NCBI GenBank assembly: GCA_965644295.1
Contig: CBFFRP010000379.1
Coordinates: forward strand, 99,585 to 163,584
Direction of reading: 5' to 3'
Origin: Paraphysomonas bandaiensis
Lineage: Eukaryota; Protista; Chrysophyceae
Length of the DNA stretch: 64,000 nt
Shown here one piece after another: positions 24,813 through 55,392 of the stretch (position 1 is the first letter of the stretch; the number at the start of each line of letters is the position of its first letter). Under the pieces are notes generated by a model, which ran no database searches, had not been told where the DNA came from, and saw nothing but the letters and a program-made list of their open reading frames with translations. A program made the translations under genes and the position numbers.

Positions 24813-25049
24813 CTTTGTCCAATCCATTCTGACTCCCGTATCCTACAGAGATACTGATAGTTGTAAACTGAAATATGTATAGTTGAATAAGCCAACTGAC
24901 TTCTACACTTCGGTCCTGTGTGTTCCAGCATGTTCTTGGGTCGTATTCGAATTCCTTGTTGGATTGGATGATCTTCAATTGCTATCAACATACACAGCAA
25001 TGGACTGGAATAATGAACTATAGTGTTCTATTATTCTAGAATTACATAA

Positions 25050-31300: not shown

Positions 31301-31754
31301 GTAGTCGTAATTAGACTATAAGCTTTTTATGCAACTGTATCGCATATTACTCTATCGTTCTCTAATTTGTGTTGTTGCTCCTGGCGATGTTTCGAACTGT
31401 CAATACAATTAATAGTTGCGGTATACAGGCAGAAAGGGACACGAGTGAACTGAGTGTGCGTATAACAGGAATTAGAGATAAATACTTAAGAGTTCTTCAA
31501 TACTTCGGAGAGGATAGCAGTTTATCTAGCAGTGACTTTTTTTCCATGCTTCTTCAGTTTATTGAGGTATGGGCAGGCTACCTTGTCGAAATTTTTATTT
31601 TAATCCTATCATTGACAACATATTTTAGGCTTGCCAAACTGAAGCTATCGCGGCCGCAAAGTCGCTGCCGAGAGAAACTGATAACTCGAGAGCCAAATCC
31701 TTTGTAGATTCGCATCAACATAATGGCGGAAGGACAAATTCGGCCTATACATGA
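28398..31754 (+). CDS. Formin (FH2 domain) with an acidic/Pro-rich N-terminus and five CCDC53/WASHC3-like repeats; multi-exon
   Basis: FH2 motifs RRKSLH, SVW, LEKLF, LIDGKRSQNACIALARL, LGPAERY, KVCNQLN, SLVKLQQVK, KTTVLRY, YFGED, FF. Confidence 0.88.
29187..30119 (+). repeat. About 4.7 nearly identical 198-bp (66-aa) coding repeats
   Basis: KEHPVYGKYVKMLSVGLPKGAVRNKMIADGVD x5, resembling the CCDC53 C-terminal motif (DPxYxKYFKMLxxGVPxxAVxxKMxxEGxD). Confidence 0.92.
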
Positions 31755-32464: not shown

Positions 32465-33590
32465 TATACTCTTGGTGACCTCGGCGCTGTCCAGAACACG
32501 CTCTGCAAAATCAGTTCCTTCAATCTCGTCCTCGTTATTTCTGTCGGATACACCAACCTCTATGGATGAATTCAGTTGCAAATGTCTAACTGTTCTTCTC
32601 TCATTGCCTGTCAACTCTCTTTCATCGTTCCCTTGAATTTTAGCCACTGCCTTCTCAAAATTTGCACTGGCAACAATGCTTGCATTAGGGGAAAGGTATG
32701 GATGCAATGCAGCTCTAGAAATTCTTGTAGCAGCATATCAAATAACTGGCGGGCTTGTTACAAATTGGTTCCATCTCTTCCGAACATACTTATTCACCAC
32801 AATAGAAAATGGTTCGTCGTTCATAACTATCCATTCCAGCCACCGAAATAAGTTCCTTGCAGCTGGAGATATTTTGTATCTTACAAAAGACAATAAATCG
32901 CCCCCGTGAAGTCTTTCACTTCCCAAAATTCTCTCGAGTTCCTCTCGTCAAGAAAAATCCGCATGTTTGGTGCCCTTCTTGGCTGTTGATTCACACAAGT
33001 CGCGTAACCTCGCTGTATATCTTGTTAAAGGAGATCATTGCACAACGAACAATAAGATACAGAGCACTGAGAGGATTCTCTGAAACCTCTCAGAAGAAGA
33101 CTCTGTAAATTACACTGCCATCAATTTTTTCGACCATCATCGTTGCTTAATATGCTGGATGTGGGATAGTATAAATACAGAGTTGTGTACTGTAGCTTCT
33201 TCCAACTGTGGGGAAAAATAGTGTTTTTTATGAATGTTTCTAGGTGAAATATGCATATTTTCAATGATTACTTTAGAGTTTTTGGGTATATGTACGTTGC
33301 TATTGATATCGCTCAGGACACTATTCTCCAACAGTTACTGTGGAATGCATTAAGAAGATAGTGAATAAGATTGCCACAGAGTGCCTGTAGAGTTGCATGA
33401 ACATTGTTGTCTAATATTCTTTAGAGATTCTTCGGAGTATAGAGGAGATACTATATTCTATTATCTTAATAACACTCAGTTCTTTATATAGCAGTACAGG
33501 TCATTAATGGTATTCCATTAATGACCCATTAATGGTAGTCCGGTTACCGGCAATTATAATGGCATTACCATTAATGGTTACCAGGCCCTG
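32465..33590 (-). mobile_element. hAT transposon remnant (second family), terminus ...GGTTACCAGGCCCTG
   Basis: Transposase fragments ARNLFRWLEWIVMNDEPFS and FEKAVAKIQ; homologous to 45090-47419. Confidence 0.8.
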
Positions 33591-33765: not shown

Positions 33766-36700
33766 TCAGGCATCACGGATTTCGTACAAAACAGTTGCAT
33801 CTGTATCATGCTGATCGTTTATTGATGAGCTTGAAATAGCAAAATCTTCTTGTGATTCTTCAACATTTCCATCGATTGCGGTTGTGTCATATGTCAACAG
33901 ATCCACATTCGTAGTGGATTCATACCCACCTTCTGTTCTACCAGACTCTGCCACCAATTCGGCATATACAATATTTTCATCCATTAAGTGTAAGCACTCT
34001 GTTGCATATGGGACTGATGTGTTGTGAGTAACTGGAAGAGACTGTTGTTCCATTTGTGGCTGAGGTGAGTCAGTTTTCGGTGTAATTTCGTCAACATCAG
34101 AACAAGAATCGTTGCAGAATCTCATACCTGGAGTCGTCATTATATCAATCAACTACAAGTACAAGTCAGTCAACCATTCGTACAAAATTATATCAAAGAA
34201 ATTCGGACCTTTTTCCAAGAACATGGTGGCCTAGAGACAAGGAAAATTTCCATATTGTTTGCAAGTCTATCGACCTCAGAATCAACGAAAGATGCCAATG
34301 ACTTTTTGTCAGTTTCAGAGGCGGCAAAATCCATCAACGTCAGTTCCCTAATACCTTCCAGGGTAATACGAGGGCAATTGTCAATATATAACAAATCCGG
34401 GTCCACACTTTCTATCTTTTCAATTAGAATACTCAATTTCAGTATAGCTATATCATTTCCTTCAACGTCATCAATGATAGTCTGAATCTTTAAGTCGATG
34501 TTCTCGTAGTCGTGTAGTTTAAGTGCTACAAGGGCAAGTTGAACAAAACTTTCGTTCAGAAAATTTTCGCTCTTGAACACTGACACAACTCGTTCAGAAA
34601 AATGTTTAGCAGTGGTGAGAATAGTGCCATTTAACATTAGTTCATTAAACGGATTTAACCGTGAAAGCTGAAAGGAATCGACAACAAGGCGTCGCAGTGT
34701 TGTACTATCAGTCTTGGCTGTGAAAAATATTTTAAAAAATTTTTCATCGTCGTAGCTTTCAATAAGATTCACAATCATATCGTGGTTGTTCATACGAAGC
34801 GCTGTAGAGAGAGATTAAAAAGAAAAAAACTACAATTTTAGAAAACGTACCGACAGAGAATAGCCCATAAATGACATGCATCAGATGCATGCGGGAACGT
34901 TCCTTGCTGCGTCGGTTAATTTTGTCAGATGCTCGACGACTTGAGTACGAATGCACCGCCTCAGCAGCAGGGGCAGAGGGGTACGAAGGATATAACTCAT
35001 CTTTACTTATAAAGCTTGCATCGGTACCTTGGTATCCACGGTCAGTACTAATATTATACCCAATAACCACTTCATCAGTTCCACGCGAATATTCCATTTC
35101 GTTAGCAGAGAGGAGGAACACCATGTGGTCCTTAAATAGACCATTCAGAAGGTCAACGACTTTCCCTTTGGTATCATTATCAACACCTTGCAACCAATCA
35201 CTGAGGGTTTTGTGGTGCTGCAAAGGTCCCGGACGATTCGCTAGTTCCTCAAACCGCAAGCACAACTCAATCATGCGCATCATCTCAGTGTCAGCACGCC
35301 GCTGTTGGAGGAGGTACAACATAATATGCCCTGGAGCCTCAACAATACATTTTAAATTTCTGCGATTGAATTCACCATTATCCGTAAGTAGAATTTGGTA
35401 TAGCAAGTTAGTGAGCACTGTCGAAGAAAAGTATCCCAGTAGTCTGGAACTCTGGTGTATCTTTGCCTCTTCTAACAAGTATTTCACGAGGTCGTCCGTA
35501 ACGTCAGCTTCGCTTTCCAATATAGTCTCAACAGCCTCAGGTATCAATCTTCCGTGCTGTATAAAGCATCTATGACTCACTAGGAGAGAAACAAATGCTC
35601 TTTTCCGCTCTGCACTATCGCCGACAGTAAACTCGCGGTGTCTGTCAGCGGGTGTGAGCCTACGGATAATGCGCAGGGCAGATTCCCAATCTCCCAGAGC
35701 AGCAAAGTGATCACATATCATAAAGCGACAGTACAGAGTGTTTTCCACCATTAGACGAACATTCGACTCTGTGAATGCGACTTTCATGTGCAACCCCTGA
35801 TACCAGTCCTTTTCATTGTCAGAACCAAAATCCCACCCTTGGTGTCCACACATGAGCATCATTTCCGCTTTATTATCTGCCCACTCAAACCGATTGCTAG
35901 CTTTGAATAGCTCCGATAAGAGTTCAATGAATACAGAGCGCTTGATCGTTATCATACTGTTTCTTTCCAAAAGAAGTACAAAAATTCTGCATACCACATC
36001 CGAAGAAAGTAGTCGAAGTATCTTCACCATTACCAAAGAAACTTGTTCATCATCAGATCCTGGATTTAATGCAAAAAGACAATTCTTAAACTCGTCCATC
36101 ATGGCCTCATTTGATCTAGCACCAAAATAGGCATCCATCAGTGTCTTCTCTCCAATAGGATCACGCAGAAAGGCCTGAAAGATATCAATCACCATCGGCT
36201 TAGCAAATTCTACACCTGATGTAGAATATTTCCAGTGTTCAGGAAAGTAATTAGAATTAATTTCTTTGCAAATTGTATTATAAAAATCATGCATTAACTC
36301 TGTTTCTTTCTTTGCAAAGCGTAGAGTTATGGAAATGGGACAAAGAGGACATAGTTCCTCAGGACATGTTATACATATTTGACGCTTAGTAGCATCAAGT
36401 GTTGCATTAGTAATTGAAATTAATGGAATATAACCCCCATTTAATACTCCAATATTGTTAAGAGCTCTTTCTATAGCCATTTCATCAGTTCCTCTTAAGG
36501 ATAAACTCCCTATACACAATCTGTAGATTTAACATATAGAAGATTACGTAAACTCATATATACAGAAGTATGTACACGTACCCATTGGGGGTTATTACAA
36601 CCATTTTTTTTTCAAAACTATCACTTTTTATATTTTCATTTGAAGAAATCTCTGATTTTGTATATGTTATAACACTCTTGATTACACGCTTTAAATGATC

Positions 36701-36802: not shown

Positions 36803-37249
36803 CTTCTATATATGGATATTTATATAAGAAATTATGAGAAGTTAATATATGAGAATACCCGCTTCGATCATCTGATCACACACCACCACATCATCACACT
36901 TCGCTTTTCACTTCCTCAACAAAAAAAACTTTCTATATATATAGAAAAAAGAAAAATAGAAATTCTTTCTGTGGGAAGATACGTACAGTACACTGTACAT
37001 GTATGTATACACACGCTCTACACACAGCAGGAGAGTACATACATTTCCAGCAAAACAAAATCGACCTTTTCAATATATTAGTGAAATATAGTGGTCATTA
37101 AAAAACAGCATGCATCAAAAAAGCCTGGATATTTAGAAATCTATTTTTGTGGGAATATGATATATTGCTGTTGCTGAGTCAATTTTGTCCAGTGCAAAGA
37201 CAAAATAGCGATTTTTTTTTTTGAATTTCTGCTCTCTCTCGTATCTGTA

Positions 37250-37400
37250 TCCTTCGTATATTTTTGTTCAATAATGCCTCTAGTATTGAGACAACAATTA
37301 TCTGTATTCCAGCCGTAGTTATAGTTCAGTAATATAGAGAATTTTTGCCTCAATTTATTTCCGAAAAATAAGATGCTGCCTGCCGTGCCGATACGCTCTG
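37250..37400. repeat. Dispersed ~140-bp repeat, also at ~45765-45905 (inverted) and ~50705-50826
   Basis: Shared core TGCCTCTA.TATTGAGACAA.AATTATCTGTATT.C.GC.GTAGTT. Confidence 0.75.
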
Positions 37401-38564
37401 CTCGAATATACTGCAAAGCAAAGCATGAAGCATTGACACAAGTCACAAGTGACTGTGTAAAGTTGATAGCATAATATTTCATGTATTGCAAAATATTTCT
37501 ATTTTGTCTTTCAATGGATTTCTGGCTTTTTGTCCTCCTATAATTCTTGCCTGTTATAATAGCATAGTAAGGGAACGTTGGCACCTTTAGGGAGTTCATC
37601 ACCTACACATGGATCCATAGGCACTACTAAGAGGCTTTTACAAGGTTGATCAGCCTTATAAGAAGAGCAGTGTTCAACAGAGTCTACAGCAAGCTCTTGG
37701 CCTCGCACAGATGGAGATGCTTGCCCATAAGGAATAGGAAGTACGTCCTGGGAGCAGCGCAACTAGCAGCTTACTAGCTATTTACTGGGAGCTAATGGCT
37801 CCTACACTGCTATTTGTGAATATGGTGTTATAGTCACACAACATCAGTAACTGAATTTACTTCCTTTGTAACTATATTCACCCGTTACAACTAGTTAATA
37901 TCACCTCTAGTGCATACTATTAATTCACTTCAATTGCACATCATACTGCAAACTCAACAGATTCCTAACGCCTATTGCTAAATAAAATTACTTTCAATAT
38001 ACGTCTGCAATATAATATGATCATCTATCTAGTTTGACTATCATAAACTTCTCCTAAAACGATCTTAATTGTTTAAAAATGACCAACAGTCAATACTTGT
38101 TTAGTACCTATAGATAAAAATTTTAGTTCTTAATAGAGGTTCCTAATGTGATTATTATTAGGTACAATGAAAAAGGACCCACCTATAGGTGGTCCTACTT
38201 AATACTGGTATAGGTGATACCTATAGAGTTAAAATGTACCTATAGGTACCAGGAAGATTAAATTAATAAAGTACCTACTTTGAGGTACTTTTTCTGAGGT
38301 CCACCGATGCAAACCTTTTCCTTTCTGGTTTTTGCTTTATATATGTGATGCAATAACTGTGAACTGTGAGGATACATAGCACAGGTAGGCTGTCATCTTA
38401 AATGATAGATTTTTTCATAAATAGGGTAGGTTCTTGCCCACGTAGCCCACCATCATAAATATAGCCATATTATAAATAAATGCATATTATACTAATTATA
38501 TAGTTATTTTCGTGTTCTTTGTACTTTTAGAGGTTCGAAACTACAAAATCTTAACCCAGCGAAA

Positions 38565-40856
38565 CTACACCTCCTCATTATCTGTTGTCGTCACAGCATT
38601 TTGAAGTCGAGCAACAATATCCTCCCACAAACCAATCCACCACTCACCGGGCACTGCAATGCGATTATGCTCCCGCCATAGTGCGATGCGGTGCCTGAGG
38701 AAGTCATGAGGCATGATATCATTTATACGGATAATCCTTCTGCAAAGCGGACAGGGGGCTTCACGGCGATTAGCAAAATAGCGATTAATAGCATCGCGGT
38801 TAAATATACATCCATCCCCAACCAACACAGGATCGTTCATTATTTCCATGGTCAGCGGGCAAACGAAGTCAACAGGCTCACGATCTTCATTGAGATAGAA
38901 CCTATCTTGATCGGGAAGACGTGAAAGTCCGTCAATCAATCCGGTGATGATAGCCATAGTATTTTGATTCAGTACTTGAACAGGCTGGGTGTAGCGCAGA
39001 ATAGCTGCTTGCAACGCGTCTACTTCCCTCAGCAGGTTCTCGCGATACAAACGCTGCTTACGCAGCAGACGAGTCACCTGTTCACGAATTTCACGTCTAC
39101 TTGGGTGTGTTTTTCTTGATTTATATACTTCCTTGCGAGTGAAATGCTTGCGAATCTGATCGGCGAGAGTAGCAACATCGAACGCATGTCGCATTATTTC
39201 AGTTGTGCGGTGCTGCCAGCGGTCAACATCGATGCGAAGGCTGTTTGCAAATCCTGCTGGCTTTTCTTGCCACTGATTTTCCAGTTGGCGAACTTCGTTA
39301 CTAAATGTAGCGAAGTGCCCCATCAGATTTCGGATTTTTCTATCCTTAGCTCGAACCCACGCGCTGCTTATATCAGTGTTGATATTAATGTATTGACGTA
39401 TCCGACCATTCGAAACAAATATTCCTCTGCGGACGGTGTCCATAGCAGCTCGCCAAGTATTGCCGTGAATATAATCCCAATCACCAGTGTCACAGATATC
39501 ACTATACAAGCGGGATATATTGTCACTAACGGAAAACGTGTCGGCGTAATCATTCATGAGTGTCCCAATTGCTTTGCGAATGTTTCGGATCAGACCATCC
39601 AAATTGCCTTGCGGGAAATTAGGTGGAGGAATTCGCAAGTTTTGTAGTTCACTTAGCATACCGATGACTTCAGTCAGCGCGTCCTCCATAGCATTTAAAG
39701 TTTCACCCTGTATTGCTCCAAGGTCTCCCAACCTGCCACGCCAGTAGTCCATGCCGAATCGATCTTCCGCACGTCGTGCATTCGATACGAATCCGACTGG
39801 TATGCGCACTTCTCTACGAACATCGCCCGCGTCGCCCCTACATAAGACTTCAATGATATGGTTTCTGGCAGTTGCTTCCATCGCTTCGAAGTCCAGATCT
39901 GCTGGTGTGTGGGGCCCTTCGTCACAGTCTTCTTCCGTGGCCAACATATCATCGGCATACGTACATACAACAGAAACTTTTTTCATGCGCAATTCTGTCG
40001 CACACAGCTCTCGAAAAGCCTGTTGTTCTTGTTTTCCTTGCAGAAATCTACTATACCGATTAGTGAACCAAATCTGCTGCCAAGAATCCACAGCCTCAAG
40101 GGCTCGCTGGGACTTCATGTCCACCGCATCAAAGAGACCCGGAGAATCCACCACAATCACATTACTGGGAAGGTGTTCAAAGTTTCCTTCGATGCGAATA
40201 AAGTCCACAGTCATGGCCTGCCATTGATCGGGTGGCGCATTTTTCGCAGGTAGATGAGAATAGATCGTCAGGGCCTCTCGTAACTCCTTTATAGAGTCTT
40301 CCTCAAGCACTAGTGGCTGGCGCCCAATGTTCTGTAAGAGTACACGGTTTTCTTCGTTCGGAGTTAGTGGAGTAGGATTCTCATAGCTAAGGTCGTTACT
40401 GAAGCAGTGCCTTATCACAGTCATTATAGCTTCGAGTCTGCTATTTTGCTTCGCGCTTCCTTCGATCTCCTGCAGCTTTTCCGCCACGTATTCAAGGCGC
40501 TCCTTCATAGTTCGGGTTGATATGAAATACACCGTTGCTTTGTATGTATTCATGTCTCGCCGAGAGACAATCTCACTCACCACTGAAGTGGATGACTTTG
40601 ACTGTGCACCGGCTGTAACAACAGTCTCTTGAAGTAACTGATTGATGAATCGCGATTTACCCTCTCCTGCGCCGCCATAGAGAGCAACTTTAGTTGGGTT
40701 TAAGTTAGTTAAGATCGTATCGCATCTGTTGATCACGTCACTGATATGGGGCCGAACATCAGCCGCTGTGTCTTCACTCGTTAGTATCTTCTGAAGACAC
40801 TCAATAATCATACGGCATTTCGCCTGAACATTTGCTCGTCTAACATCATCCGCCAT
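38565..40856 (-). CDS. Dynamin-like (NUGGC/SLIP-GC-like) GTPase fused to a C-terminal U-box/RING-type E3 domain, copy A (763 aa from MADDVRR)
   Basis: G1 GGAGEGKS, G2 ST, G3 DSPGLFD, G4-like TYAD, helical stalk, U-box FVCPLTMEIMNDPVLVGDGCIFNRDAINRYF...CPLCR; intronless. Confidence 0.85.
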   Translation of the reverse strand: MADDVRRANVQAKCRMIIECLQKILTSEDTAADVRPHISDVINRCDTILTNLNPTKVALYGGAGEGKSRFINQLLQETVVTAGAQSKSSTSVVSEIVSRRDMNTYKATVYFISTRTMKERLEYVAEKLQEIEGSAKQNSRLEAIMTVIRHCFSNDLSYENPTPLTPNEENRVLLQNIGRQPLVLEEDSIKELREALTIYSHLPAKNAPPDQWQAMTVDFIRIEGNFEHLPSNVIVVDSPGLFDAVDMKSQRALEAVDSWQQIWFTNRYSRFLQGKQEQQAFRELCATELRMKKVSVVCTYADDMLATEEDCDEGPHTPADLDFEAMEATARNHIIEVLCRGDAGDVRREVRIPVGFVSNARRAEDRFGMDYWRGRLGDLGAIQGETLNAMEDALTEVIGMLSELQNLRIPPPNFPQGNLDGLIRNIRKAIGTLMNDYADTFSVSDNISRLYSDICDTGDWDYIHGNTWRAAMDTVRRGIFVSNGRIRQYININTDISSAWVRAKDRKIRNLMGHFATFSNEVRQLENQWQEKPAGFANSLRIDVDRWQHRTTEIMRHAFDVATLADQIRKHFTRKEVYKSRKTHPSRREIREQVTRLLRKQRLYRENLLREVDALQAAILRYTQPVQVLNQNTMAIITGLIDGLSRLPDQDRFYLNEDREPVDFVCPLTMEIMNDPVLVGDGCIFNRDAINRYFANRREAPCPLCRRIIRINDIMPHDFLRHRIALWREHNRIAVPGEWWIGLWEDIVARLQNAVTTTDNEEV

Positions 40857-41734
40857 GTGTGTATCTTGTGGTGTAGTTGTGATGCTCTGAGTGTATGATA
40901 ATAGAAGGAGATCGTGTAGATATGCATACACAGAGAGAAGATACGCAACATCAACTTGAATGAGTGGAGCACAATCGTGTTGCCCCACGAGAAGAATATT
41001 CAAAGATACCACAAGAATATTTGAAAAGATACACGTGTTTGCTCTACTAGTATATGCATCTCTAGAGTTTCTAAAGCAGCCTCCATTTCCAACTATGGAC
41101 AAACCAACCCAACCTGCCTCACAATGTCTGCATCCTACCCTCGTAGACGTACTGTGTATAGTCATATAGTCCTATCTAGATATACAGAGTACATGTGTAC
41201 ATTACACAGCAGATTTCTATAAATACCCGGATTTATGGTTTTACGAGTATAATAATGGCAAAAATATTTCCTAAATACCCTTTTTTTTACTTGTAAAATC
41301 ATGAGTATATTATTATACAAGTTAAAAAAATGGTATTTAGGAAATATTTTTGCCATTATTATACTCGTAAATCCATAAATCCGGGTATTTATAGAAATCC
41401 TCGCTCCTATTGCTGTGTAATCTGTACTCTGTATATCTAGACGTCTACGAGGGTAGGATGCAGACATTGTGAGGCAGGTTGGGTTGGTTTGTCCATAGTT
41501 GGAAATGGAGGCTGCTTTAGAAACTCTAGAGATGCATATACTAGTAGAGCAAACACGTGTATCTTTTCAAATATTCTTGTGGTATCTTTGAATATTCTTC
41601 TCGTGGGGCAACACGATTGTGCTCCACTCATTCAAGTTGATGTTGCGTATCTTCTCTCTGTGTATGCATATCTACACGATCTCCTTCTATTATCATACAC
41701 TCAGAGCATCACAACTACACCACAAGATACACAC

Positions 41735-44035
41735 ATGGCGGATGATGTTAGACGAGCAAATGTTCAGGCGAAATGCCGTATGATTATTGAGTGTCTTCAG
41801 AAGATACTAACGAGTGAAGACACAGCGGCTGATGTTCGGCCCCATATCAGTGACGTGATCAACAGATGCGATACGATCTTAACTAACTTAAACCCAACTA
41901 AAGTTGCTCTCTATGGCGGCGCAGGAGAGGGTAAATCGCGATTCATCAATCAGTTACTTCAAGAGCCTGTTGTTACAGCCGGTGCACAGTCAAAGTCATC
42001 CACTTCAGTGGTGAGTGAGATTGTCTCTCGGCGAGACATGAATACATACAAAGCAACGGTGTATTTCATATCAACCCGAACTATGAAGGAGCGCCTTGAA
42101 TACGTGGCGGAAATGTTGCAGGAGAATATTGCAGTCGAAGGAAGCGCGAAGCAAAATAGCAGACTCGAAGCTATAATGACTGTGATAAGGCACTGCTTCA
42201 GTAGCGACCTTAGCTATGAGAATCCTACTCCACTAACTCCGAACGAAGAAAACCGTGTACTCTTACAGAACATTGGGCGCCAGCCACTAGTGCTTGAGGA
42301 AGACTCCATAAAGGAGTTACGAGAGGCCCTGACGATCTATTCTCATCTACCTGCGGACAATGCGCCACCCGATCAATGGCAGGCCATGACTGTGGACTTT
42401 ATTCGCATCGAAGGAAACTTTGAACACCTTCCCAGTAATGTGATTGTGGTGGATTCTCCGGGTCTCTTTGATGCGGTGGACATGAAGTCCCAGCGAGCCC
42501 TTGAGGCTGTGGATTCTTGGCAGCAGATTTGGTTCACTAATCGGTATAGTAGATTTCTGCAAGGGAAACAAGAGCAACAGGCTTTTCGAGAGCTGTGTGC
42601 GACAGAATTGCGCATGAAAAAAGTTTCTGTTGTATGTACGTATGCCGATGATATGTTGGCCACGGAAGAAGACTGTGACGAAGGGCCCCACACACCAGCA
42701 GATCTGGACTTCGAAGCGATGGAAGCAACTGCCAGAAACCATATCATTGAAGTCTTATGTAGGGGCGACGCGGGCGATGTTCGTAGAGAAGTGCGCATAC
42801 CAGTCGGATTCGTATCGAATGCACGACGTGCGGAAGATCGATTCGGCATGGACTACTGGCGTGGCAGGTTGGGAGACCTTGGAGCAATACAGGGTGAAAC
42901 TTTAAATGCAATGGAGGACGCGCTGACTGAAGTCATCGGCATGCTAAGTGAACTACAAAACTTGCGCATTCCTCCACCTAATTTCCCGCAAGGCAATTTG
43001 GATGGTCTGATCCGAAACATTCGCGAAGCGATTGGGACACTCATGAATGATTACGCCGACACGTTTTCCGTTCGTGACAATATTTCCCTCTTGTATAGTG
43101 ATATCTGTGACACTGGTGATTGGGATTATATTCACGGCAATACTTGGAAAGTGACTATGGACACCGTCCGCAGAGGAATATTTGTTTCGCATTGCCCGAT
43201 GCGTCAATACATTAATATCAACACTGATATAAGCAGCGCGTGGGTTCGAGCTAAGGATAGAAAAATCCGAAATCTGATGGGGCAATTCGCTACATTTAGT
43301 AACGAAGTTCGCCAACTGGAAAATCAGTGGCAAGAAAAGCCAGCAGGATTTGCAAACAGCCTTCGCATCAATGTTGACCGCTGGCAGCACCACACAACTG
43401 AAATAATGCGACATGCGTTCGATGTTGCTACTCTCGCCGATCAGATTCGCAAGCATTTCACTCGCAAGGAAGTATATAAATCAAGAAGAAGACATCCAAG
43501 TAGACGTGAAATTCGTGAACAGGTGACTCGTCTACTGGATAAGCAGCGTTTGTATCGCGAGAACCTGCTGAGGGAAGTAGATGCGTTGCAAGCAGCTATT
43601 CTGTGCTCCACCCAGCCTGTTCAAGTACTGAATCAAAATACTGTGTCTATCATCACCGGATTGATTGACACACTTCAACACCTTCCCGATCAAGATAGGT
43701 TTTATCTCAATAAAGATCGTGTGTCTGTTGACTTCGTTTGCCCGCTGACCATGGAAATAATGAACGATCCTGTGTTGGTTGGGGATGGATGTATAGTTGA
43801 CCGCGATGCTATTAATCGCTATTTTGCTAATCGTCTTGAAGCCCCCTGTCCGCTTTGCGGAAAGATTATCCATATAAATGATATCATTCCTCATGACTTC
43901 CTCAGGCACCGCATCACACTATGGCGGGAGCATAATCGCATTGCAGTGCCCGGTGAGTGGTGGATTGGTTTGTGGGAGGATATTGTTGCTCGACTTCAAA
44001 ATGCTGTGACGACAACAGATAATGAGGAGGTGTAG
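41735..44035 (+). CDS. Dynamin-like GTPase/U-box fusion, copy B (766 aa from MADDVRR)
   Basis: Same motifs as copy A; intact ORF; clustered substitutions relative to A. Confidence 0.85.
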   Translation: MADDVRRANVQAKCRMIIECLQKILTSEDTAADVRPHISDVINRCDTILTNLNPTKVALYGGAGEGKSRFINQLLQEPVVTAGAQSKSSTSVVSEIVSRRDMNTYKATVYFISTRTMKERLEYVAEMLQENIAVEGSAKQNSRLEAIMTVIRHCFSSDLSYENPTPLTPNEENRVLLQNIGRQPLVLEEDSIKELREALTIYSHLPADNAPPDQWQAMTVDFIRIEGNFEHLPSNVIVVDSPGLFDAVDMKSQRALEAVDSWQQIWFTNRYSRFLQGKQEQQAFRELCATELRMKKVSVVCTYADDMLATEEDCDEGPHTPADLDFEAMEATARNHIIEVLCRGDAGDVRREVRIPVGFVSNARRAEDRFGMDYWRGRLGDLGAIQGETLNAMEDALTEVIGMLSELQNLRIPPPNFPQGNLDGLIRNIREAIGTLMNDYADTFSVRDNISLLYSDICDTGDWDYIHGNTWKVTMDTVRRGIFVSHCPMRQYININTDISSAWVRAKDRKIRNLMGQFATFSNEVRQLENQWQEKPAGFANSLRINVDRWQHHTTEIMRHAFDVATLADQIRKHFTRKEVYKSRRRHPSRREIREQVTRLLDKQRLYRENLLREVDALQAAILCSTQPVQVLNQNTVSIITGLIDTLQHLPDQDRFYLNKDRVSVDFVCPLTMEIMNDPVLVGDGCIVDRDAINRYFANRLEAPCPLCGKIIHINDIIPHDFLRHRITLWREHNRIAVPGEWWIGLWEDIVARLQNAVTTTDNEEV

Positions 44036-44676
44036 TTTCGCTGGGTTAAGATTTTGTAGTTTCGAACCTCTAAAAGTACAAAGAACACGAAAATAACTAT
44101 ATAATTAGTATAATATGCATTTATTTATAATATGGCTATATTTATGATGGTGGGCTACGTGGGCAAGAACCTACCCTATTTATGAAAAGGTCAATCAGTT
44201 AAGATGACAGCCTGCCTGTGCTATGTATCCTCACAGTTCACAGTTATTGCATCACATATATAAAGCAAAAACCAGAAAGGAAAAGGTTTGCATCGGTGGA
44301 CCTAAGAAAAAGCACCCAAAGATAGGGGAGGGAGTATGATGATATATATTATATTGTGCAATTGAAGTGAGTTAATAGTGTGCAATAGGTGAAAGGTGAA
44401 GTCAACTCATAGGTGTTAAGGTGATTATAGGTACAAAGGAATTAAATTTAGTTACTGGTTACTGATGTGCGACTATACAAGTTATAGTACTGACGTACTG
44501 ACTGATGAACATATGATAAACAGATGTTGCTGAGAACAGATGTTTCATCAGATGTTACACGAATATGTAGTGAAGTGTTCAGAATAATAATTATAATTTC
44601 TTACTTGAAAGCGCATATCCAATTCTAACATATTACTTATAAGTCCTCCTTACTCTCCGCTCCTCTGTATACAAAC

Positions 44677-47419
44677 CAAGGCCTGATAGCCATGAATGGT
44701 AGTCCAGTTCCCGGCAATTAGAATGGCATTAATGAAAAATGTCCCGGCAATTATAATGGCCATTAATGGCAATTAATACCTACTAACTTAAAGTAGATAG
44801 AACCACTCATATAATAGATAGTGTTGTGCTCCCTTAATTACTAATTTTTAGTGAAATAGCAGACTACAAATTTTAACTACTTCTCGCTCTCTACTGGCAC
44901 ATCAGGATCTTCTTGCAGGGCTTTATGGAGGGTATAAACATCCCACAACATGTAATTGGCTCGTAGGAATAGCAACGATTCTAGACGATATGGATTCATG
45001 TTTTTACGCTCAGGTGTCATAATAAACTTTGCACGACTAAAGAGCCTCTCAACAACATGAGATTGTGCTTCAATATGAAGCAAGCAGCGGTAGTTGCTCT
45101 CTTGGTGACCTCGGCGCTGTCCACAACACGCTGTGCAAAATCAGTTCCTTCAATCTCGTCCTCGTTATTTCTGTCGGATACACCAACCTCTATGGATGAA
45201 TTCAGTTGCAAATGTCTCACTGCTCTTCTCTCATTGCCTGTCAACTCTCTTTCATCGTTCCCTTGAATTTTAGCCACTGCCTTCTCAAAAATTTCACTGG
45301 CAACAATAATGCTTGCATTCGGGGAAAAGTATGGATGCAATGCAGCTCTAGAAATTCTTGTAGCAGCATATCAAATAACTGGTGGGTTTGTTACAAATTG
45401 GTTCCATTTCTTCCGAACATACTTATTCACCACAATAGAAAATGGTTCGTCGTTCATGACTATCCATTCCAGCCATCGAAATAAGTTCCTTGCAGTAGGA
45501 GGCACTTTCGTTCTTATAAAAGACAATAAATCGCCCGCTGTGAAGTCTTTCATTTCCACGAAATTCTCTTGAATTCCTCTCGTCAAGATGAATCCGCATG
45601 TTTGATGCCTGCCTCTCTTAGCTATATGATTCAAACAAGTTGTGTAACCTCACTGTATAGAGCACTGAGAGGATTCTCTGAAACCATTCAGATGAAGACT
45701 CAGACTGTAAATTACACTGCCATTAATTGTGTTGGTCATCATCGTTGCTTACTATGCTGCGTATGGGCAGTCAGTATCTTATTTTTTCGGGAATAAATTG
45801 AAGCAAATATTGTCTATATTACTGCAGTCTAACTACGGCTGGAATACAGATAATTGTTGTCTCAATAATAGAGGCATCTTGGAACAAAAATACACAAAGG
45901 ATGCCGATATGCTGGTACTGTAGCTTCTTTCAACTTTGGGGAAAACTAGTGTTTTTATGAATGTTTTTAGGTGAAATATGCTTATTTTCAATGATTATTT
46001 TAGAGTTTTTGGGTATATGGGTAGGTTGCTATGGATACCGCTCAGGACACTATTCTCTAACTGTGGAATGCATGCATGCATTGAGAAGATAGTGAACAAG
46101 GTTGCCACAGAGTGCCTGTAGAATTGCATGAACATTGTTGTCTAATACTGTTTAGAGGAGATACTATATTCTATTATCTTAATAACACTCAGTTCTATAT
46201 ATAGCAGCACAGGTCGTTTATGGGATGCCATTAAAGTCGAGGTAATACCAAAACCTGGTAACGCGATTTCACCAGGTTTCATATCTAAGTATTGAGTTAT
46301 TATTTTACTGCAATTTGTATCTGAGAGGTTAAAGATAAAGAAAAAGTTGCAATTATAGTTGTTATTAGCAATATTTATTGCGTTACAAGTTGGCCCTGTC
46401 ACGACATGTGTTTTGTAATATCATATTCTCATATAGCTGCATTTGCCTCTCTTGAGATTGCAAACGCTCCAACCGAATAGCCTGATTTTGGATACAATGC
46501 ATACGCATAAAGCTATCTTCACCACTACTACTTACAGTAGTAGTATTAGTACCTATGCTCTGAGACGACGCGGCTACAGCCGTTAGGGGCACATTACTAG
46601 TAGGTGGAGGATTATAAGCAGGTGGAGGATCATCATTTTTTCTCATTAAAAGATCACGAAGTTCTGCTAGTCCGAACATCATTTCCTGACGAAGTTCAGC
46701 AACAGCGGGAGGTATCAGATCTGCTTTCTGCTGGGATTCGACGACCCCGCCATCATCTTCACGAATTTCGACCACATTCTTCTTCCCTTTGTAATTCTCC
46801 TACACCATTATACTACACAGTTAGTACAGTGTATAGTAACTACGCACAACAATAATCAGAACAATACCGCATATATACGTACGACGACCCCGTCACCATG
46901 AACAGTACTACGTACCCTGCTCGTGCGCTTTCGTGGTACCTCCGAGTCGTTGGATATGTCGCCACGAATTTCGACCACATTCTTCTTCCCTTAGTGACAG
47001 AGCCTACAACCGAATGGGTGGATCAAGGCGCTCTCTCATCAGAGAATGTTGTGACCGGGAAACGTCGACGTAGTAGTGGGGTATCGTACAAAGAATAGCT
47101 TTATATTATGCTTGACGGAATAGCTTGAACTACTGTATAATATATATATGTGTAGTCGGTGACTTTTATTGCTGTAAAACTGAAGTAATATGGAAGAAAG
47201 TAGTAAAGAATATTATAAACAATACTTTTCACACTGTTAATATCTTCATAGTTACTTATTGTGCATATTTAAACCCTTTTCCGACCATCATCAAAAATTT
47301 CACCAGGTTTTACATCAAAAACCAGGTTTTGGTATTACCTCGACTTTTAATTGCCCATTAATGGTAGTCCGGTTACCGGCAATTATAATGGCATTACCAT
47401 TAATGGTTACCAGGCCCTG
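44677..47419 (-). mobile_element. Internally deleted hAT transposon (second family) carrying a nested insertion
   Basis: Imperfect TIR CAAGGCCTGATAGCCATGAATGG / CCATTAATGGTTACCAGGCCCTG; dimerization motif VERLFSRAKFIMTPERKNMNPYRLESLLFLRAN. Confidence 0.8.
46234..47346. mobile_element. PIF/Harbinger-like non-autonomous element with 26-bp TIR and TTA TSD
   Basis: TIR AAGTCGAGGTAATACCAAAACCTGGT; TTA at 46231-33 and 47347-49; an empty site is present in the paralogous hAT end at ~33515. Confidence 0.82.
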
Positions 47420-48545: not shown

Positions 48546-50160
48546 TCATAAGTACTTTATAATTTCCCATCTCCCCCGGCACTGTTCACTTGTGCGTGAG
48601 TCATTCATTGCCTTGCTCACTTGAGACCACAAAATCGTGCCATGAACATCTAACACCACCCCCACAGCAACCCGGAGGCTCTCGTCCTCTTCAGCTGACC
48701 ATGTACCTGTACTTTTGGCGGTTCCAAATTCGCGGTATTTCACCGTCTGTTCCCAGCGTTGGAAACACTGTTTGCCTGTACGGGTTCCCCCCATGTGCTC
48801 ACACACTTTCACCCAGGAAATCTTAGATCCTTCCTGTCGGCATTTCTTCACCCCTTGTAACAAGAGTTCATCCTCTTCCTGAGACCACGGGCCAAGAACA
48901 ACCCCTTCTGTTTGGCGTTGCATTGATCCCCACTTCGTACAGCACTGCATGGCCGATCGAGTCCCGTTCATGTATTCACTAACGGCTGCCCAACATATTC
49001 CTTTTCTGCGCCCACTGGTGTCGTGTGCAGCCACTGCCTCGGTCAATAATGCAATCTGTTGACAACATAAACATCAAATAAAAGTATTTCTATGATATAT
49101 AAGGCAGTAGACGTATTTGTCACATACCTCGTCAGAAGTCCAAAATCTAGAGTCATCAGTGCGGCTGCATAGCCGATTCCAACGTCTCTGGCATGCCTTT
49201 GGCTTACGTTGACCACCCATATACATCGACACATTTTGCCACGAAATCTGGTCTAGAGTAGAGTCCTTCCTATCGGTTTCAACAGCTTGTTTCAGTCTGC
49301 ACAAAATAAATAGTGAGATTACAATGCTGAGGGGCAGATGATTGTACGATATATTCCGCACGTATGAGACGAAATCGGTGCAGTGTGATATAAAACATGC
49401 GGAATTCTATGAAGTGCTTATTTGAGGATATACAACTCAAAATAATGTAAAGAGGCGGCTGTAGAATGATACTGTCAGTGACAACAGGGTAATATACTCA
49501 CAGTTCGTCCTCTTCTTCTGTCCAGGCTCCAGTTTTCGCATCAACACCATCCGCCCAACACAGAGTATCATTCCATCGTCTACAACACTGTACATCTGTT
49601 CTACCTTCACCAACATATTCAGCAACTTTTGCCCAACATGCACCATCATATGTTCCTTTATTCTTATTAGCATACATTTCAACTGCTTCTCTTACACGTT
49701 TATCCATTGCAGGTGTCCATCCTCCATCAGCTCCTTGATTAATAGACCACCATTTCTGTTGACATTGTTCTGATGATCTTGTTCCTACAGCTTCACTCAC
49801 AACAGCCCAACTTATTCGTGATGTACATTGTTGTTTACATAATTCCACTGCATTATTTAATCTTTGAACTTCATTATCATCCCAGTAACCAACTGTATGA
49901 TTATTCTCATCTGAACTCTCATGTTTCTTTCTTTTCACTCTATTCATTTCCATTGTATTGAATTCATTTTGATGATCATATTCATTTCTTTGTAGTTTCT
50001 TATTTATTGTATTCATATTTGAATTCTTCATAGAATCTGATTCGGATATAAATAATGAAGATACAGGAGCATTATGATCAAACATCAGATGAATATCCTC
50101 ATCATCATCACTCAATATATAATTTTGATGTGAATTTTGATGTAATTTGATTGAATTCAT
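48546..50160 (-). CDS. MYB protein with six tandem MYB repeats (3 exons)
   Basis: Six W..EE...W..V....R...QC..RW units across ~50160-49502, 49297-49128 and 49036-48546. Confidence 0.88.
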
Positions 50161-51023
50161 TATTTTATTATATAAAAATATGTAGAAATGAATAATTTTG
50201 AATTAGAATATGACAATTTTTGTAAAAATATGGAATTTTGTTGAAAGTATTAGCATATGAATATTCGAATGAAAGTAGAAGTGCAGCATATTCAATGAAG
50301 TTTAATTAGACACTTGGATTAGGATGGAAGTGGAATGGGAATGAAGTGGTATGTATATACGATCCACTTATATATGATTTATGTATGTTTATGTATTTAT
50401 GTATATCGAGGTATGTATTGTGGGTTGGAGGTGTGTATAGAATACGATTGTAGGTGGTGTGTCTGTGTGCCTGTGTGCCTGTCTGTCGATGTATGTCTGT
50501 ATGTCTGTTGGCACGTATGTACATCGCGCATTCTGTGTACTTACATACATATGTATGTACATATGTGCGTATGTATGTACATACAGTAGGCAGGTACGAT
50601 CGTAGGTGGATGGGTATATACAGCAGTACACATAGGTAGGTATACTCACTGTATAACGTAAACACTCGCCAAATGGGCCCGTATAATTGGTTGCATTACG
50701 TACGGCATTCTTTGTATATTTTTGTTCATAGATGCCTCTAATATTGAGACAATAATTATCTGTATTTCCGCTGTAGTTGTATTGCTGTAATGTAGATAAT
50801 ATTTGCTTCAATTTATTCCCGAAAAATGCAATGTATTCCTATTGGTTGTATGCTATATGAGGCACAGCTCTATATGATACGTGTGTATGTCTATGTATAG
50901 AGGGATATGTATGTATATGTACATACAGTTACAGTTAGTAGAGTTGTTCTTTAACGACTATATGGCATACTAACCAAACTAACACATACATACATACATA
51001 TTTCATCTACTTCATCATTTAAT

Positions 51024-51640: not shown

Positions 51641-52724
51641 TAACCTCTAGTGCCTGAACGTTGTTGATATTTCTTCTTTATTCAATGACAATATGTGTTC
51701 GTTTTTTATTATTCATACTATTATGTCAACTGAGTGGTGTTGAATTGTGTTATCACATACGAAGTAATGGTTACTATGATTTCTGCATGAAGAAGAGTTA
51801 ATACGACAGAAGACAGAACTTTAATGGACTAATATTTTCTGTTCTAGTATACTAACTAAGCAATTTGTCTGAGAATGTAATAGATTGAAAATTTCACAAA
51901 CAAGAAACGAGGAAATCAACGCAAAATATGAAATATTCTCCGCTATTCTAGTCTAGCTACAGAATGAAAGAATTATAGTAGAGGGCATTTCAGCTCTTCT
52001 ACTACTCCTACTGTTATGTGTGTTGCTATTAAATAGAGAAAACGCCCTTTAAATATAATATCGTTCAAACGTGTGTGGTCACACATAGGTCACATACGTA
52101 TAGTGTAAAACTAGAAAGAAAGTATATGCAATATACAGGATCCATCCTATCATGCATGAAAAAAAAGCGGGATGGCTTATACGCTCCGCTTGCAGGCAAT
52201 GGGTCCGTTAAATCGAATCCCTAAAATCTATACCTTATTATTTTCCCATAAAATAAACAAGAATAATTAGAACGCCCGAATTGCGGAGCAATTTGCGACC
52301 AGGGGGGAGGATCTTTAGATCCGGAGGGAGCCTGGTATATTATTCTGAATGTTTTATATTAATGTAATATCAATCTTTTTTATATATCTTTTATGTATAT
52401 CTATATTAATAATTCTTCTTATATTATTTCGATTACTAATATCCTATTTATAAATTGACATTTTGGCATTGGCATTTTATAGTAAAATAATCTGGCTGAA
52501 ATAATATTTTATAAAATAGAGTTTCAAAAGTATAAATTGCCAGCGCCTAAATGCCATCGTCGTTATTATAGTTAAGAGTAGAAAACAGCTCGCCACCATA
52601 CCTACTACACTATCTTATCGTACCCACACAATAGCGTCATCACTGTCTACTTATGTACTATGTCTTTAAGTCATATCGATATTTAAAAAAGGTTTAAAGA
52701 ATTGATTTGTTGATTACATACCTA

Positions 52725-52757
52725 AAGTATTTTTTATATTAAAACTACTTAAAGAAT
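52725..52757 (+). promoter_or_regulatory. Putative viral promoter, exact 33-bp repeat of 53149-53181; core ACTTAAA(G/A)A also at 54957, 55357, 57740
   Basis: The core sits 32-38 nt upstream of the ATG of five + strand non-structural ORFs. Confidence 0.7.
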
Positions 52758-52778
52758 TACAAATATAGTATTATTATA

Positions 52779-53120
52779 ATGAACGAAACTTTAGACAAAC
52801 CTGTTTTGATGATGACAAAATTAGAGCAAGATGAAATAAGACAATCTGATGAATACAAAAAAGCTATCAAGTACATACCTTATCTATTTAAAACCCGCAA
52901 AACCTTTAATAATAGGCAATGGTCTTATGGAATGAAGCACACTGTAGAAAGATACATACGGACTTATAATCTTGAGAACAATTATTACGTTTCTAATAAT
53001 GCTTTAATATTGGGTATGATAGATTCGGGTTTCAAAGCAAAGCATGAATCTAACACTCAAAATTATATATTCAATTTCACAGAAACTATTATCAACAAAA
53101 ATATGAGAAAACAACGATAG
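52779..53120 (+). CDS. Viral hypothetical protein (SYGMKH..ER...YVSN motif)
   Basis: Clean ORF preceded by the shared upstream motif. Confidence 0.7.
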   Translation: MNETLDKPVLMMTKLEQDEIRQSDEYKKAIKYIPYLFKTRKTFNNRQWSYGMKHTVERYIRTYNLENNYYVSNNALILGMIDSGFKAKHESNTQNYIFNFTETIINKNMRKQR

Positions 53121-53208
53121 AGCCTATTTTTATTTATATTGTCAAATTAAGTATTTTTTATATTAAAACTACTTAAAGAATATTTATATATAGTATTATT
53201 ATAAAAGA

Positions 53209-54951: not shown

Positions 54952-54993
54952 AAAGTACTTAAAAAATTATTATATATAGTTTAGTTATATATA

Positions 54994-55347: not shown

Positions 55348-55392
55348 TATAAAACTACTTAAAAAATAATTAATATAATAATAATATATAGA

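Follow-up and report, generated by a model that had tools for sequence, protein, structure and literature searches.

A nearly spacer-less palindrome carrying two predicted dynamin-like GTPase/U-box genes in the chrysophyte Paraphysomonas bandaiensis

The stretch of 64,000 nucleotides (nt) analysed here, referred to below as the window, is taken from contig CBFFRP010000379.1 of Paraphysomonas bandaiensis (assembly GCA_965644295.1, positions 99,585 to 163,584 of the forward strand) and carries a 6,053-nt palindrome at 38274-44326, in which two head-to-head genes, A and B, each encode a protein predicted to join a GTPase (G) domain of the dynamin superfamily, through a long helical stalk, to a C-terminal U-box of the E3 ubiquitin ligase type. 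As judged from the DNA, the palindrome appears to be a genuine young inverted duplication in a nuclear protist genome, with two intact and intronless paralogues. The protein appears to be a new combination of known parts, namely a GTPase of the bacterial dynamin-like protein (DLP) type and a C-terminal U-box within one chain. The explanation preferred as a whole is that of a young palindrome shaped by gene conversion, whose two soluble DLP-class GTPase/U-box paralogues would act as nucleotide-gated E3 ligases of a surveillance type; it is held with moderate confidence.

The extent of the palindrome had been proposed from inspection of the letters alone (the sequence-only reading) and was borne out by nested inverted repeats found with a repeat finder, by self-BLAST and by alignment of the two arms (Table 1). 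Self-BLAST aligned the region with its own reverse complement at 95.8% identity over 6106 columns, gaps counted, and global alignment of the arms (3029 and 3018 nt) gave 2924 matches and 73 mismatches, corresponding to 97.6% identity, together with six indels of 11, 6, 25, 9, 1 and 1 nt. The 73 substitutions consist of 40 transitions and 33 transversions. Beyond the arms (past ~44326) the identity drops to 59%. Both flanks are unique, save for 124 nt left from an older inverted homology (77%), which lie outside the left arm with an offset of ~300 nt. The tiny central loop that had been expected is present, although it measures 6 nt rather than ~10 bp, and the description of the palindrome as spacer-less holds for this loop but not for the whole core, which is interrupted by the asymmetric indels of 11, 6 and 25 nt. 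All three of these lie within ~130 nt of the loop, so that the core is an imperfect hairpin; the section 41151-41440 contains asymmetric indels and nine mismatches. Folded as single-stranded DNA, the sequence 41140-41470 reached -114.7 kcal/mol, as compared with -23 ± 3.7 kcal/mol for shuffled sequences (z = -25).

No difference was found in the 294 nt upstream of each start codon (40857-41150 against 41441-41734). A single bidirectional promoter shared by both genes, as assumed in the sequence-only reading, does not match this arrangement; instead there are two inverted copies of the upstream region, each ~440 nt from the centre. Since the 294 nt preceding both starts are 100% identical, co-regulation of genes A and B is nevertheless plausible.

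Translation of both genes was taken to begin at the methionine of the sequence MADDV (position 40856, minus strand, in gene A; position 41735, plus strand, in gene B), because the closest relative, a protein of 65% identity (P0151), has its start there, at least 90% of 28 aligned family members share Met1, and the open reading frame (ORF) upstream of it translates to an implausible sequence. The extensions found in the longer ORF forms of 866 and 848 amino acids (aa) are probably non-coding. By exact look-up, neither the 763-aa nor the 866-aa form of the protein is on record. Both genes are intact, each with a full ORF, and their intronless nature, likewise noted beforehand, is supported by colinearity with a transcript-like contig that carries the 65% relative. 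They differ at 53 codons (39 non-synonymous and 14 synonymous differences) and by a 3-codon indel; the latter, a 9-nt in-frame indel at 42126-42134 in the G domain of gene B, is the only indel in the coding sequences. The genes had been called relatively GC-rich, which is true (47% against ~38% for the window), yet the value lies within the range of the host exons, which span 35-52%. No further copy or fragment of either gene was found within the 64-kb window. Just after the stop codon of gene A, and in a mirror copy after that of gene B, the 3′ untranslated region (UTR) contains a 35-nt element that is identical at 29-30 of 35 nt (83-86%) to the corresponding element of the 65% relative on two environmental contigs (L001, 2343-2377, and L002), while the coding DNA is 75% identical; the element may represent a conserved regulatory element of the 3′ UTR.

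The predicted order, with a G domain of the dynamin superfamily followed by a helical stalk and, at the C-terminus, a U-box, was confirmed by Pfam, profile and Foldseek comparisons. With the window protein alone, Pfam reported the U-box at 46 bits against a cut-off of 21.4, and Dynamin_N at 21 bits against a cut-off of 27. As the latter score is below the threshold, the dynamin assignment needed profile and fold evidence. All 28 members of a family alignment (A1) match Dynamin_N at E <= 1e-3, the best at 3.8e-23, and relatives score 38-60 bits on this model. The A1 profile searched against the sequences of the PDB recovered the Campylobacter DLP (5owv_A, 2.7e-23), the Nostoc BDLP (2j68, 4.6e-18), IniA (2e-12), SynDLP (6e-11) and Fzo1 (~7e-9). 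An AlphaFold2 model built on A1 has a mean predicted local distance difference test score (pLDDT) of 79 and a predicted template-modelling (TM) score of 0.69; its elements are listed in Table 1. In the comparison of this model with the PDB by Foldseek, SynDLP, Cj-DLP, BDLP and IniA were on top (1e-12 to 1e-9), followed by mitofusins, dynamin 1, Drp1 and MxA/MxB at 1e-7 to 1e-6, all with probability 1.00. The global TM-scores are low (0.2-0.35), as is expected in multi-domain hinged proteins. Since the profile search and the fold search yielded the same ranking, the G domain is assigned to the bacterial-DLP/mitofusin class rather than to classical dynamin, Mx or GBP; the sequence-only reading was right about the superfamily, and its dynamin-family assignment is refined by this class.

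Membership in the dynamin superfamily is indicated by the match to the family model, by the G1, G3 and G4 motifs and by the helical stalk together with the fold match. The P-loop, D-S-P-G and T-Y-A-D motifs, all named beforehand, are present. Residues Gly61, Gly66, Lys67 and Ser68 of G1 as well as Asp237, Pro239 and Gly240 of G3 are invariant or nearly so across A1. The G4 motif has the form T-x-x-D, being T-Y-A-D in the window proteins and T-K-x-D in several relatives, so that the aspartate is kept and the lysine replaced. The highest mean Kyte-Doolittle value over 19 residues is only 1.04 and is located in the U-box, which implies that the protein has neither a transmembrane segment nor a hydrophobic paddle; the membrane anchor of the bacterial-DLP/mitofusin class is thus missing. 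At the tip of the stalk, where the paddle would be expected, there is a polar hairpin module conserved in the family, with Gly478 and Asp495 present in at least 90% of the members. Lacking a membrane anchor and carrying an added E3 domain, the protein is not filed as a canonical BDLP or mitofusin.

Among characterised proteins, the bacterial DLPs (Nostoc BDLP, 2j68/2j69; Campylobacter DLP1/2, 5owv; Mycobacterium IniA, 6j72; Synechocystis SynDLP, 7zw6) are the best profile and fold matches. They share with the window protein the dynamin-type G1 and G3 motifs, helices preceding the G domain, a long helical neck or trunk following it, and a similar length of ~600-800 aa; identity in structural alignments is 10-14%. 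In contrast to them, the window protein is eukaryotic, encoded in the nucleus by an intronless gene, and devoid of a hydrophobic paddle or membrane segment, and its C-terminal U-box is found in no solved DLP. Mitofusin/Fzo1 resembles it by the Fzo1 profile match mentioned above and by a fold match of MFN1/2 at ~1e-7, but the window protein has no transmembrane helices, possesses an E3 domain and lacks an N-terminal extension before the conserved Met1, which leaves no room for a targeting sequence. The large antiviral or antimicrobial GTPases Mx, GBP and IRG belong to the same superfamily and, unlike the window protein, have no E3 domain; the analogy drawn by the sequence-only reading is with self-assembling cell-autonomous effectors of this sort, but they are not the closest class, as MxA/MxB ranks below every bacterial DLP and also below the best mitofusin match (MFN2, 6jfk).

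The C-terminal domain qualifies as a U-box, scoring above the curated Pfam threshold and being a RING-like domain without the full set of zinc ligands. When the window protein was searched against PDB sequences, only U-boxes were retrieved (plant PUB12 and related proteins, LubX), with E-values from 1e-7 to 1e-5 over residues 658-736 and ~1e-7 for plant PUB. Within A1, the C-terminal domains form a graded series of RING ligand retention. Two members (P0010 and P0013) keep all eight ligand columns and are called C3HC4 RINGs by Pfam, and most members retain five columns. The window proteins have cysteine at the first, seventh and eighth columns as well as a cysteine where most relatives have histidine, the other ligands being lost; in the 65% relative the eighth column is lost too. 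Along the series, the Pfam call moves from RING models to the U-box model, which points to a RING-to-U-box transition inside one family. The domain thus resembles the U-box of E3 ligases of the plant PUB12/13, CHIP, UFD2 and Legionella LubX types in its Pfam score and PDB sequence matches, but differs from them in that it caps a GTPase stalk and that three or four of the former RING ligand positions still hold cysteine. With these cysteines retained, it is regarded as standing between a classical U-box and the RINGs found in its relatives.

Only one characterised protein was found in which a GTPase of the dynamin superfamily and an E3 domain of the RING type share a single chain, namely RNF112 (ZNF179, neurolastin). 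Its RING is N-terminal and its GTPase is of the GBP/atlastin type. [quoted passage not shown] By comparison, the window protein has a BDLP-type G domain, a long stalk and a C-terminal U-box; the order of the domains is opposite and the class of the G domain different, and it is not a protein of the RNF112 type. RNF112 is also absent from the PDB sequence and fold matches, so that the two look like independent fusions and RNF112 like an analogue rather than a relative. Literature searches returned no description of a bacterial-DLP GTPase fused to a C-terminal E3 domain, although a word search cannot prove absence. One survey of eukaryotic dynamins explicitly excluded the BDLP/mitofusin classes (PMC10280142) and another does not mention E3 fusions (PMC11789081).

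The family was delineated by an exhaustive HMMER search of 1.84 billion representatives, which gave 1165 matches of 82-1755 aa, 39 of them below 1e-10 and most restricted to the U-box. Full-length relatives, with Dynamin_N plus a C-terminal RING or U-box, make up ~25 clusters of 690-835 aa and 19-26% identity; P0151 stands apart with 65% identity over 755 residues. A word-indexed protein search returned nothing at E <= 1e-3 with the full protein and nothing at 1e-10 with A1, which is attributed to its prefilter, given the matches of the exhaustive search. On related G domains, other C-terminal modules were found as well, namely HECT (P0140), protein kinase (P0019) and DUF7605 (P0083), and one protein (P0018) has four related G domains in tandem. 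This points to modular effector swapping among the relatives, and the fusion of related G domains to HECT and kinase too suggests that the link between GTPase and E3 ligase arose more than once.

Every relative traces to an environmental assembly (Tara Oceans via ENA, JGI, Logan). In the 20 clusters looked up, no member came from an annotated NCBI or UniRef proteome or from a named one; as a diatom proteome is part of the same collection, this suggests a patchy distribution. Pattern scans of JGI metagenome contigs revealed no close relatives. The 65% relative is encoded on a 2.4-kb contig (L001) that consists essentially of one ORF with a short leader and trailer and is transcript-like; its run accession is presumably one of the Tara Oceans metatranscriptome series. 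A Tara metagenome scaffold (L002, 1-7615) ends in the same gene, of which it covers the last 141 codons and the 3′ UTR. The remainder of this scaffold bears plastid-type genes (Tic20, SufB, rpl19, rpl33, rps18 and a YggT-like gene) at 26-40% GC, and the GC content jumps from ~28% to ~48% at roughly position 7000, where this part of the relative's gene sets in, so that the scaffold is most likely a chimera with plastid-type DNA.

The surroundings of the more distant relatives are diverse. Three loci (L003-L005) lie in compact eukaryotic DNA with genes for Vps26 and RRM-domain proteins nearby, two (L007 and L011) have unremarkable surroundings, and three contigs from related genomes (L008-L010) share genes for a gamma-tubulin-complex protein, a DEAD helicase and a proteasome ATPase as neighbours. 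At one locus (L006, 7621-12116) a relative's GTPase part of 588 aa and its RING part of 146 aa were called as two genes on one strand, 64 nt apart, and a D5-like primase-helicase gene (DUF5906, 8e-8) is situated directly upstream. Whether other members of the family also form palindromes had been raised as a check of the sequence-only reading, and the outcome was negative: a tblastn comparison of family members with all relative loci detected one copy per locus and no inverted partner, in six distinct contexts. Within the sampled loci the palindrome is therefore particular to the window.

The differences between the two arms are unevenly distributed, stalk and U-box being 92-96% identical. In bins of 200 nt, the arms are 100% identical at 41506-41905, 98-100% up to 42905, 92-97.5% at 42906-43905 and 99.5% at 43906-44105, and the mismatches are over-dispersed along the arm (chi-square 64.4, 14 degrees of freedom, p = 2e-8); in the 3′ flank there are 8 differences in 282 nt. 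The synonymous divergence (dS) between genes A and B is 0.035 overall and 0.06 in the stalk. With its unique flanks and a patchy arm identity beyond uniform divergence, the structure corresponds to palindromes maintained by gene conversion. From the over-dispersed mismatches, the lack of any difference in the 294 nt upstream as against the dS of the stalk, and the outer remnant of 77% identity, we infer that recurrent gene conversion from arm to arm shaped the mosaic. Promoter constraint could contribute to the upstream identity, but would hardly be enough for perfect identity. The palindrome can accordingly be viewed as a probable further case of a known kind, the gene-conversion-type genomic palindrome. 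It resembles the palindromes of primate sex chromosomes in having a head-to-head gene pair in near-identical arms, a mosaic identity and fully homogenised tracts, and differs from them, as those have spacers of kilobases, whereas the window palindrome has a 6-nt spacer, arms of 3 kb and one gene per arm, and belongs to a protist.

The ratio of non-synonymous to synonymous divergence (dN/dS) between genes A and B is 0.71 over all codons, 0.29 over codons 1-400, 0.92 over codons 401-763 (only ~49 changes) and 1.5 for U-box plus tail (13 changes). Between gene A and the 65% relative it is 0.32 over all codons (dS 0.79), which shows that the family is under purifying selection. Several of the amino-acid differences between the two copies cluster in the hairpin loop of the stalk (residues 482-485) and just before it (468-470), and the family alignment is likewise variable at the hairpin loop, between conserved flanking positions.

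Outside the palindrome, the window contains ordinary eukaryotic genes with a short intron of the GT..AG type, including exons of eIF5, a DEAH helicase and a formin, as well as two Myb-domain ORFs that probably belong to a single gene as exons. Of the matches to the eIF5 exon, a metagenome protein shows 96% identity, and the representative of a cluster that holds a protein of the diatom Mediolabrus comicus 67%; this pointed to a diatom or another ochrophyte as the probable source, with no sign of animal, crop-plant or human DNA. Scans of the window with Rfam and for tRNAs were empty. A CCDC53 match reported by Pfam was rejected as spurious, being produced by the 198-nt repeat of the formin FH1 part. 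The ORFs without Pfam matches (Table 1) are not mutually paralogous and have no counterpart beside the relatives; the long ones at 5253-7997, 23251-24555 and 33766-36519 are presumably lineage-specific host genes. A direct repeat of ~1 kb (32469-33521 and 45099-46234, ~85% identity) brackets a 12.6-kb segment with the palindrome and ORFs lacking matches, and its right-hand copy is interrupted by a 144-nt dispersed repeat. The latter belongs to a set of three copies of ~125-145 nt in mixed orientation (37242-37384, 45766-45909 and 50703-50827; 84-88% identity), which may be an element similar to miniature inverted-repeat transposable elements. A location of the palindrome inside a long terminal repeat (LTR) element was considered and rejected, as no transposon or LTR-type coding content was found.

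A low-GC element of viral or mobile character occupies part of the right-hand side of the window. A 17-nt motif, AAAACTACTTAAAGAAT, occurs in six copies (with up to three mismatches) in the window, all of them inside 52741-58349, and none of 100 shuffles reached six copies. Four of the copies precede the start codons at 52779, 53209, 54994 and 55393 by 38-44 nt, and the motif looks like an element-specific promoter motif; a scan of the window showed it to be absent from the palindrome. The GC content of the element is 28-31% and that of its third codon positions (GC3) 22-26%, as compared with 47% and 45% for genes A and B. No broken genes were noticed in the element, although no systematic search for them was made. 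The proposal that the same element adjoins the relative at L006 was discarded, the D5-like proteins of the two being only marginally similar (22% identity, E = 0.013).

Table 1. Features of the palindrome, its two genes and the remainder of the window (positions refer to the window unless given as residues; aa, amino acids; nt, nucleotides)
Feature	Position	Strand	Basis or remark
Palindrome left arm: gene A, its 3′ flank, its upstream region	38274..41302	-	inverted-repeat pairs, self-BLAST, arm alignment
Central loop, 6 nt	41303..41308		gap between 91-nt arms
Palindrome right arm: upstream region, gene B, 3′ flank	41309..44326	+	inverted-repeat pairs, self-BLAST, arm alignment
Outer arm pair	38274-40465 / 42135-44326		2192 nt, 97% complementary (repeat finder)
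Inner arm pair	40466-41150 / 41441-42125		685 nt, 100% (repeat finder)
Innermost arm pair	41212-41302 / 41309-41399		91 nt, 95%, 6 nt between (repeat finder)
Region between the two start codons	40857..41734		two inverted upstream/promoter-region copies meeting at the centre
Remnant of older inverted homology outside left arm	37829..37940, partner 44355-44477		77% (self-BLAST)
Gene A coding sequence, 763 aa, stop codon included	38565..40856	-	ORF, start position, Pfam, AlphaFold model
Gene B coding sequence, 766-aa paralogue	41735..44035	+	ORF, start position
Gene A G domain, residues ~52-360 (G1 61-68, G3 237-240, G4 299-302)	39777..40703	-	motif columns, model, profile and fold matches
Gene B G domain, residues ~52-363	41888..42823	+	as for gene A G domain
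Gene A helical stalk, residues ~361-650, including family-conserved hairpin module ~455-500	38907..39776	-	helices 369-403 to 631-646, strands 479-491
Gene B helical stalk	42824..43693	+	most diverged part of the arm (92-96% identity)
Gene A U-box, residues 661-732	38661..38876	-	PF04564 4e-12, 46.5 bits; PDB sequence matches; zinc-ligand columns
Gene B U-box, residues 664-735	43724..43939	+	PF04564 1.2e-11, 45.0 bits
Gene A C-terminal Trp-rich helix, residues 739-756	38589..38642	-	Trp739 conserved in at least 90% of the family
Conserved 35-nt element in gene A 3′ UTR, just after stop	38528..38562	-	mirror copy 44038-44072 (+)
Model: N-terminal helices	residues 3-51		
Model: alpha/beta G domain	residues ~52-360		
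Model: long helical stalk	residues 369-646		interrupted by beta-hairpin 479-491
Model: low-confidence linker	residues 649-660		
Model: U-box	residues 661-732		
Model: Trp-rich terminal helix	residues 739-756		
Low-GC virus-like or mobile element	~52700-59540		GC 25-32%, compact ORFs, several small ORFs
D5-like primase-helicase ORF	53209-54951		Pfam D5_N 3e-4; PHROG 'DNA primase' 2.7e-17
416-aa ORF without matches	55393-56643		single-sequence AlphaFold model, pLDDT 37.5, too low for a fold comparison
Integrase-core ORF	56744-57685	-	1.5e-7; 32.0 bits against cut-off 32.6
eIF5 N-terminal exon	14271-14945		
DEAH-helicase HA2 exon	20347-21150		
Formin, FH1 repeats and FH2 exons	28971-31707		short intron beginning GTAAGT
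Two Myb-domain ORFs	48546-50160		probably exons of one gene
Long ORF, 914 aa	5253-7997	-	no Pfam match
Long ORF, 434 aa	23251-24555	-	no Pfam match
ORFs of 586, 201 and 128 aa	33766-36519	-	no Pfam match
ORF	37141-37602		no Pfam match
Tandem array, eleven copies of 150-nt unit	14811-16610		just after eIF5 exon
Tandem array, five copies of 198-nt unit	29186-30277		proline-rich FH1 part of formin
(TACA)n microsatellite	24634-24841		
233-nt duplicated unit	25210-25683		with internal inverted repeats

In proteins of the dynamin superfamily, G domains dimerise across the nucleotide pocket and stalks drive higher-order assembly; RING and U-box E3 ligases are usually active as dimers or clusters. A mechanism can be proposed on this basis, in which GTP-dependent dimerisation of the G domains and stalk-mediated self-assembly would take place on some target surface. 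As E3 ligases of these types generally work as dimers or clusters, such an assembly would juxtapose the C-terminal U-boxes and thereby switch on ubiquitin transfer, so that the protein would behave as a nucleotide-gated E3 ligase placing ubiquitin on whatever the polymer coats or on itself. The paralogues A and B, having nearly identical G domains, could co-assemble, and their genes would be homogenised near the centre of the palindrome by arm-to-arm gene conversion while stalk and U-box diverge. A function in cell-autonomous surveillance, be it defence or the quality control of organelles or membranes, appears most likely. It is favoured by the swapping of C-terminal effectors, the fast divergence and the seemingly patchy distribution of the family, as well as by the relaxed or diversifying distal half of the two copies and the one relative that lies beside a D5-like gene.

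Three alternatives concern the locus itself. Fold-back artefacts in long-read libraries are known to yield near-perfect palindromes with a tiny loop, and the 685-nt tract beside the centre is 100% identical; the palindrome might accordingly result from a fold-back chimeric read, or from a head-to-head join of two haplotypes, in a genome that is really single-copy. A fold-back copy of one molecule would be identical, whereas the arms here carry 73 substitutions, an in-frame 9-nt indel and three asymmetric central indels. Nor are the arms two alleles with allelic flanks, given that the flanks are unrelated except for the offset remnant, and the reading frame is kept open in both copies; an assembly artefact is thus extremely unlikely. 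It is quite unlikely, too, that the pair is a decaying duplicate, one or both copies being silent and drifting neutrally with frames intact merely through youth. The dN/dS values of 0.92 and 1.5 in the distal part (the latter from 13 changes) and the low overall dS would agree with such decay, but ~2.3 kb per copy are free of stops and frameshifts, the sole coding indel is in frame, the N-terminal half has a dN/dS of 0.29, the catalytic motifs are identical in both copies, and the promoter regions have been kept identical. A viral origin, with the genes as cargo or remnant of a giant-virus insertion or of the neighbouring element, has several observations on its side: giant viruses of protists encode dynamin-family proteins of the same fold (E 1e-10 to 1e-5), a Tupanvirus protein annotated with a RING domain is among the fold matches (E 8e-4), the relative at L006 adjoins a D5-like primase-helicase gene, a low-GC element with D5-like and integrase-like genes begins ~8 kb away, and the codon usage of genes A and B correlates with that of host exons at r = 0.43-0.49 only, against 0.76 among the host exons themselves. 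It is considered very unlikely all the same, since the GC and GC3 of the two genes are within the host exon range and far from those of the element, the 17-nt motif is confined to 52.7-58.4 kb and never occurs near the palindrome, the Myb gene along with other sequence separates the two, pattern scans of IMG/VR yielded no relatives, other relatives reside among ordinary eukaryotic genes, and the fold matches to viral proteins do not surpass those to bacterial proteins. The compositional distinctness of the element and the distribution of its motif make the proximity look coincidental, an option that the sequence-only reading had left room for.

As to function, the main competitor of a surveillance role is a housekeeping protein of membrane or organelle dynamics, similar to mitofusin or FZL, in which the E3 domain would regulate the turnover of the protein itself or of a partner and the palindrome would be incidental. 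The nearest solved relatives are indeed membrane-fusion or membrane-repair DLPs and mitofusins, distant relatives on three contigs (L008-L010) are single-copy in a conserved housekeeping neighbourhood, the family dN/dS is 0.32, and the window protein has no PADLOC match; but transmembrane segment, hydrophobic paddle and N-terminal targeting extension are all missing, most members are only 19-26% identical to the window protein, which indicates fast evolution, the 20 clusters looked up contain no protein of an annotated NCBI or UniRef proteome, suggesting a patchy distribution, and the C-terminal effectors (RING, U-box, HECT, kinase) are swapped among relatives. The sequence-only reading had itself named a conserved single-copy housekeeping gene as a finding that would speak against it, and this applies in part: the relatives at L008-L010 are single-copy and syntenic, yet they are only ~22% identical and have no E3 domain. 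On these grounds a housekeeping role is judged rather unlikely. Several observations nevertheless weigh against the preferred surveillance reading. Apart from the synteny just mentioned, no conserved neighbour gene was found across the relative loci; pattern scans of IMG/VR viral contigs disclosed neither close nor more distant relatives; and PADLOC, a library of bacterial anti-phage defence, contains no family for the window protein, which thus shows no homology to a catalogued defence protein, while two relatives give no more than weak matches to LeoA (E 6e-5 and 6e-3) over the P-loop region. Members of the bacterial-DLP/mitofusin class are known above all from membrane fusion and repair and not from immunity, although the window protein is without the membrane-binding paddle or transmembrane segment of that class. 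The Dynamin_N score of the window protein itself is below the Pfam threshold, GTPase competence is not certain because the G4 lysine of several relatives is a tyrosine here, and the dN/dS of 0.92 fits relaxation after duplication as well as diversification. The reported independence of RNF112 autoubiquitination from the dynamin-like properties of that protein (PMC12012479) weakens the idea of a nucleotide-gated E3 ligase. The antiviral sensor-plus-ubiquitylation effector envisaged by the sequence-only reading is backed by none of the tests run here, and antiviral defence specifically is a somewhat doubtful assignment. A still wider proposal would regard the fusions of DLPs with RING, U-box or HECT domains as unrecognised effectors of eukaryotic cell-autonomous immunity, which polymerise on something foreign, for instance a virus factory, capsid or parasite membrane, and tag it with ubiquitin, the palindrome keeping two specificities, divergent in stalk, hairpin and U-box, under an identical promoter by gene conversion; this proposal is unlikely in such a complete form.

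Dynamin-superfamily GTPases and RING/U-box ligases are each well known, and a chain that joins a bacterial-DLP-type GTPase to a C-terminal E3 domain is absent from the surveys consulted. The occurrence of related G domains joined to RING, U-box and HECT across lineages suggests a recurrent coupling of GTP-driven assembly with ubiquitylation in protists, and the graded RING-to-U-box series, seen here among homologues of a single family, helps in understanding how U-boxes come about. The palindrome is a small natural case of an inverted duplication with almost no spacer, made up of a mosaic of homogenised and diverging segments. If the immune interpretation were true, it would be a parallel of independent origin in protists to the GBP-coat-plus-E3 and TRIM mechanisms of animals. 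Should the coupling of GTP-driven assembly with ubiquitylation be confirmed, the dynamin superfamily would gain a new architecture, and algae of ecological importance a candidate surveillance system.

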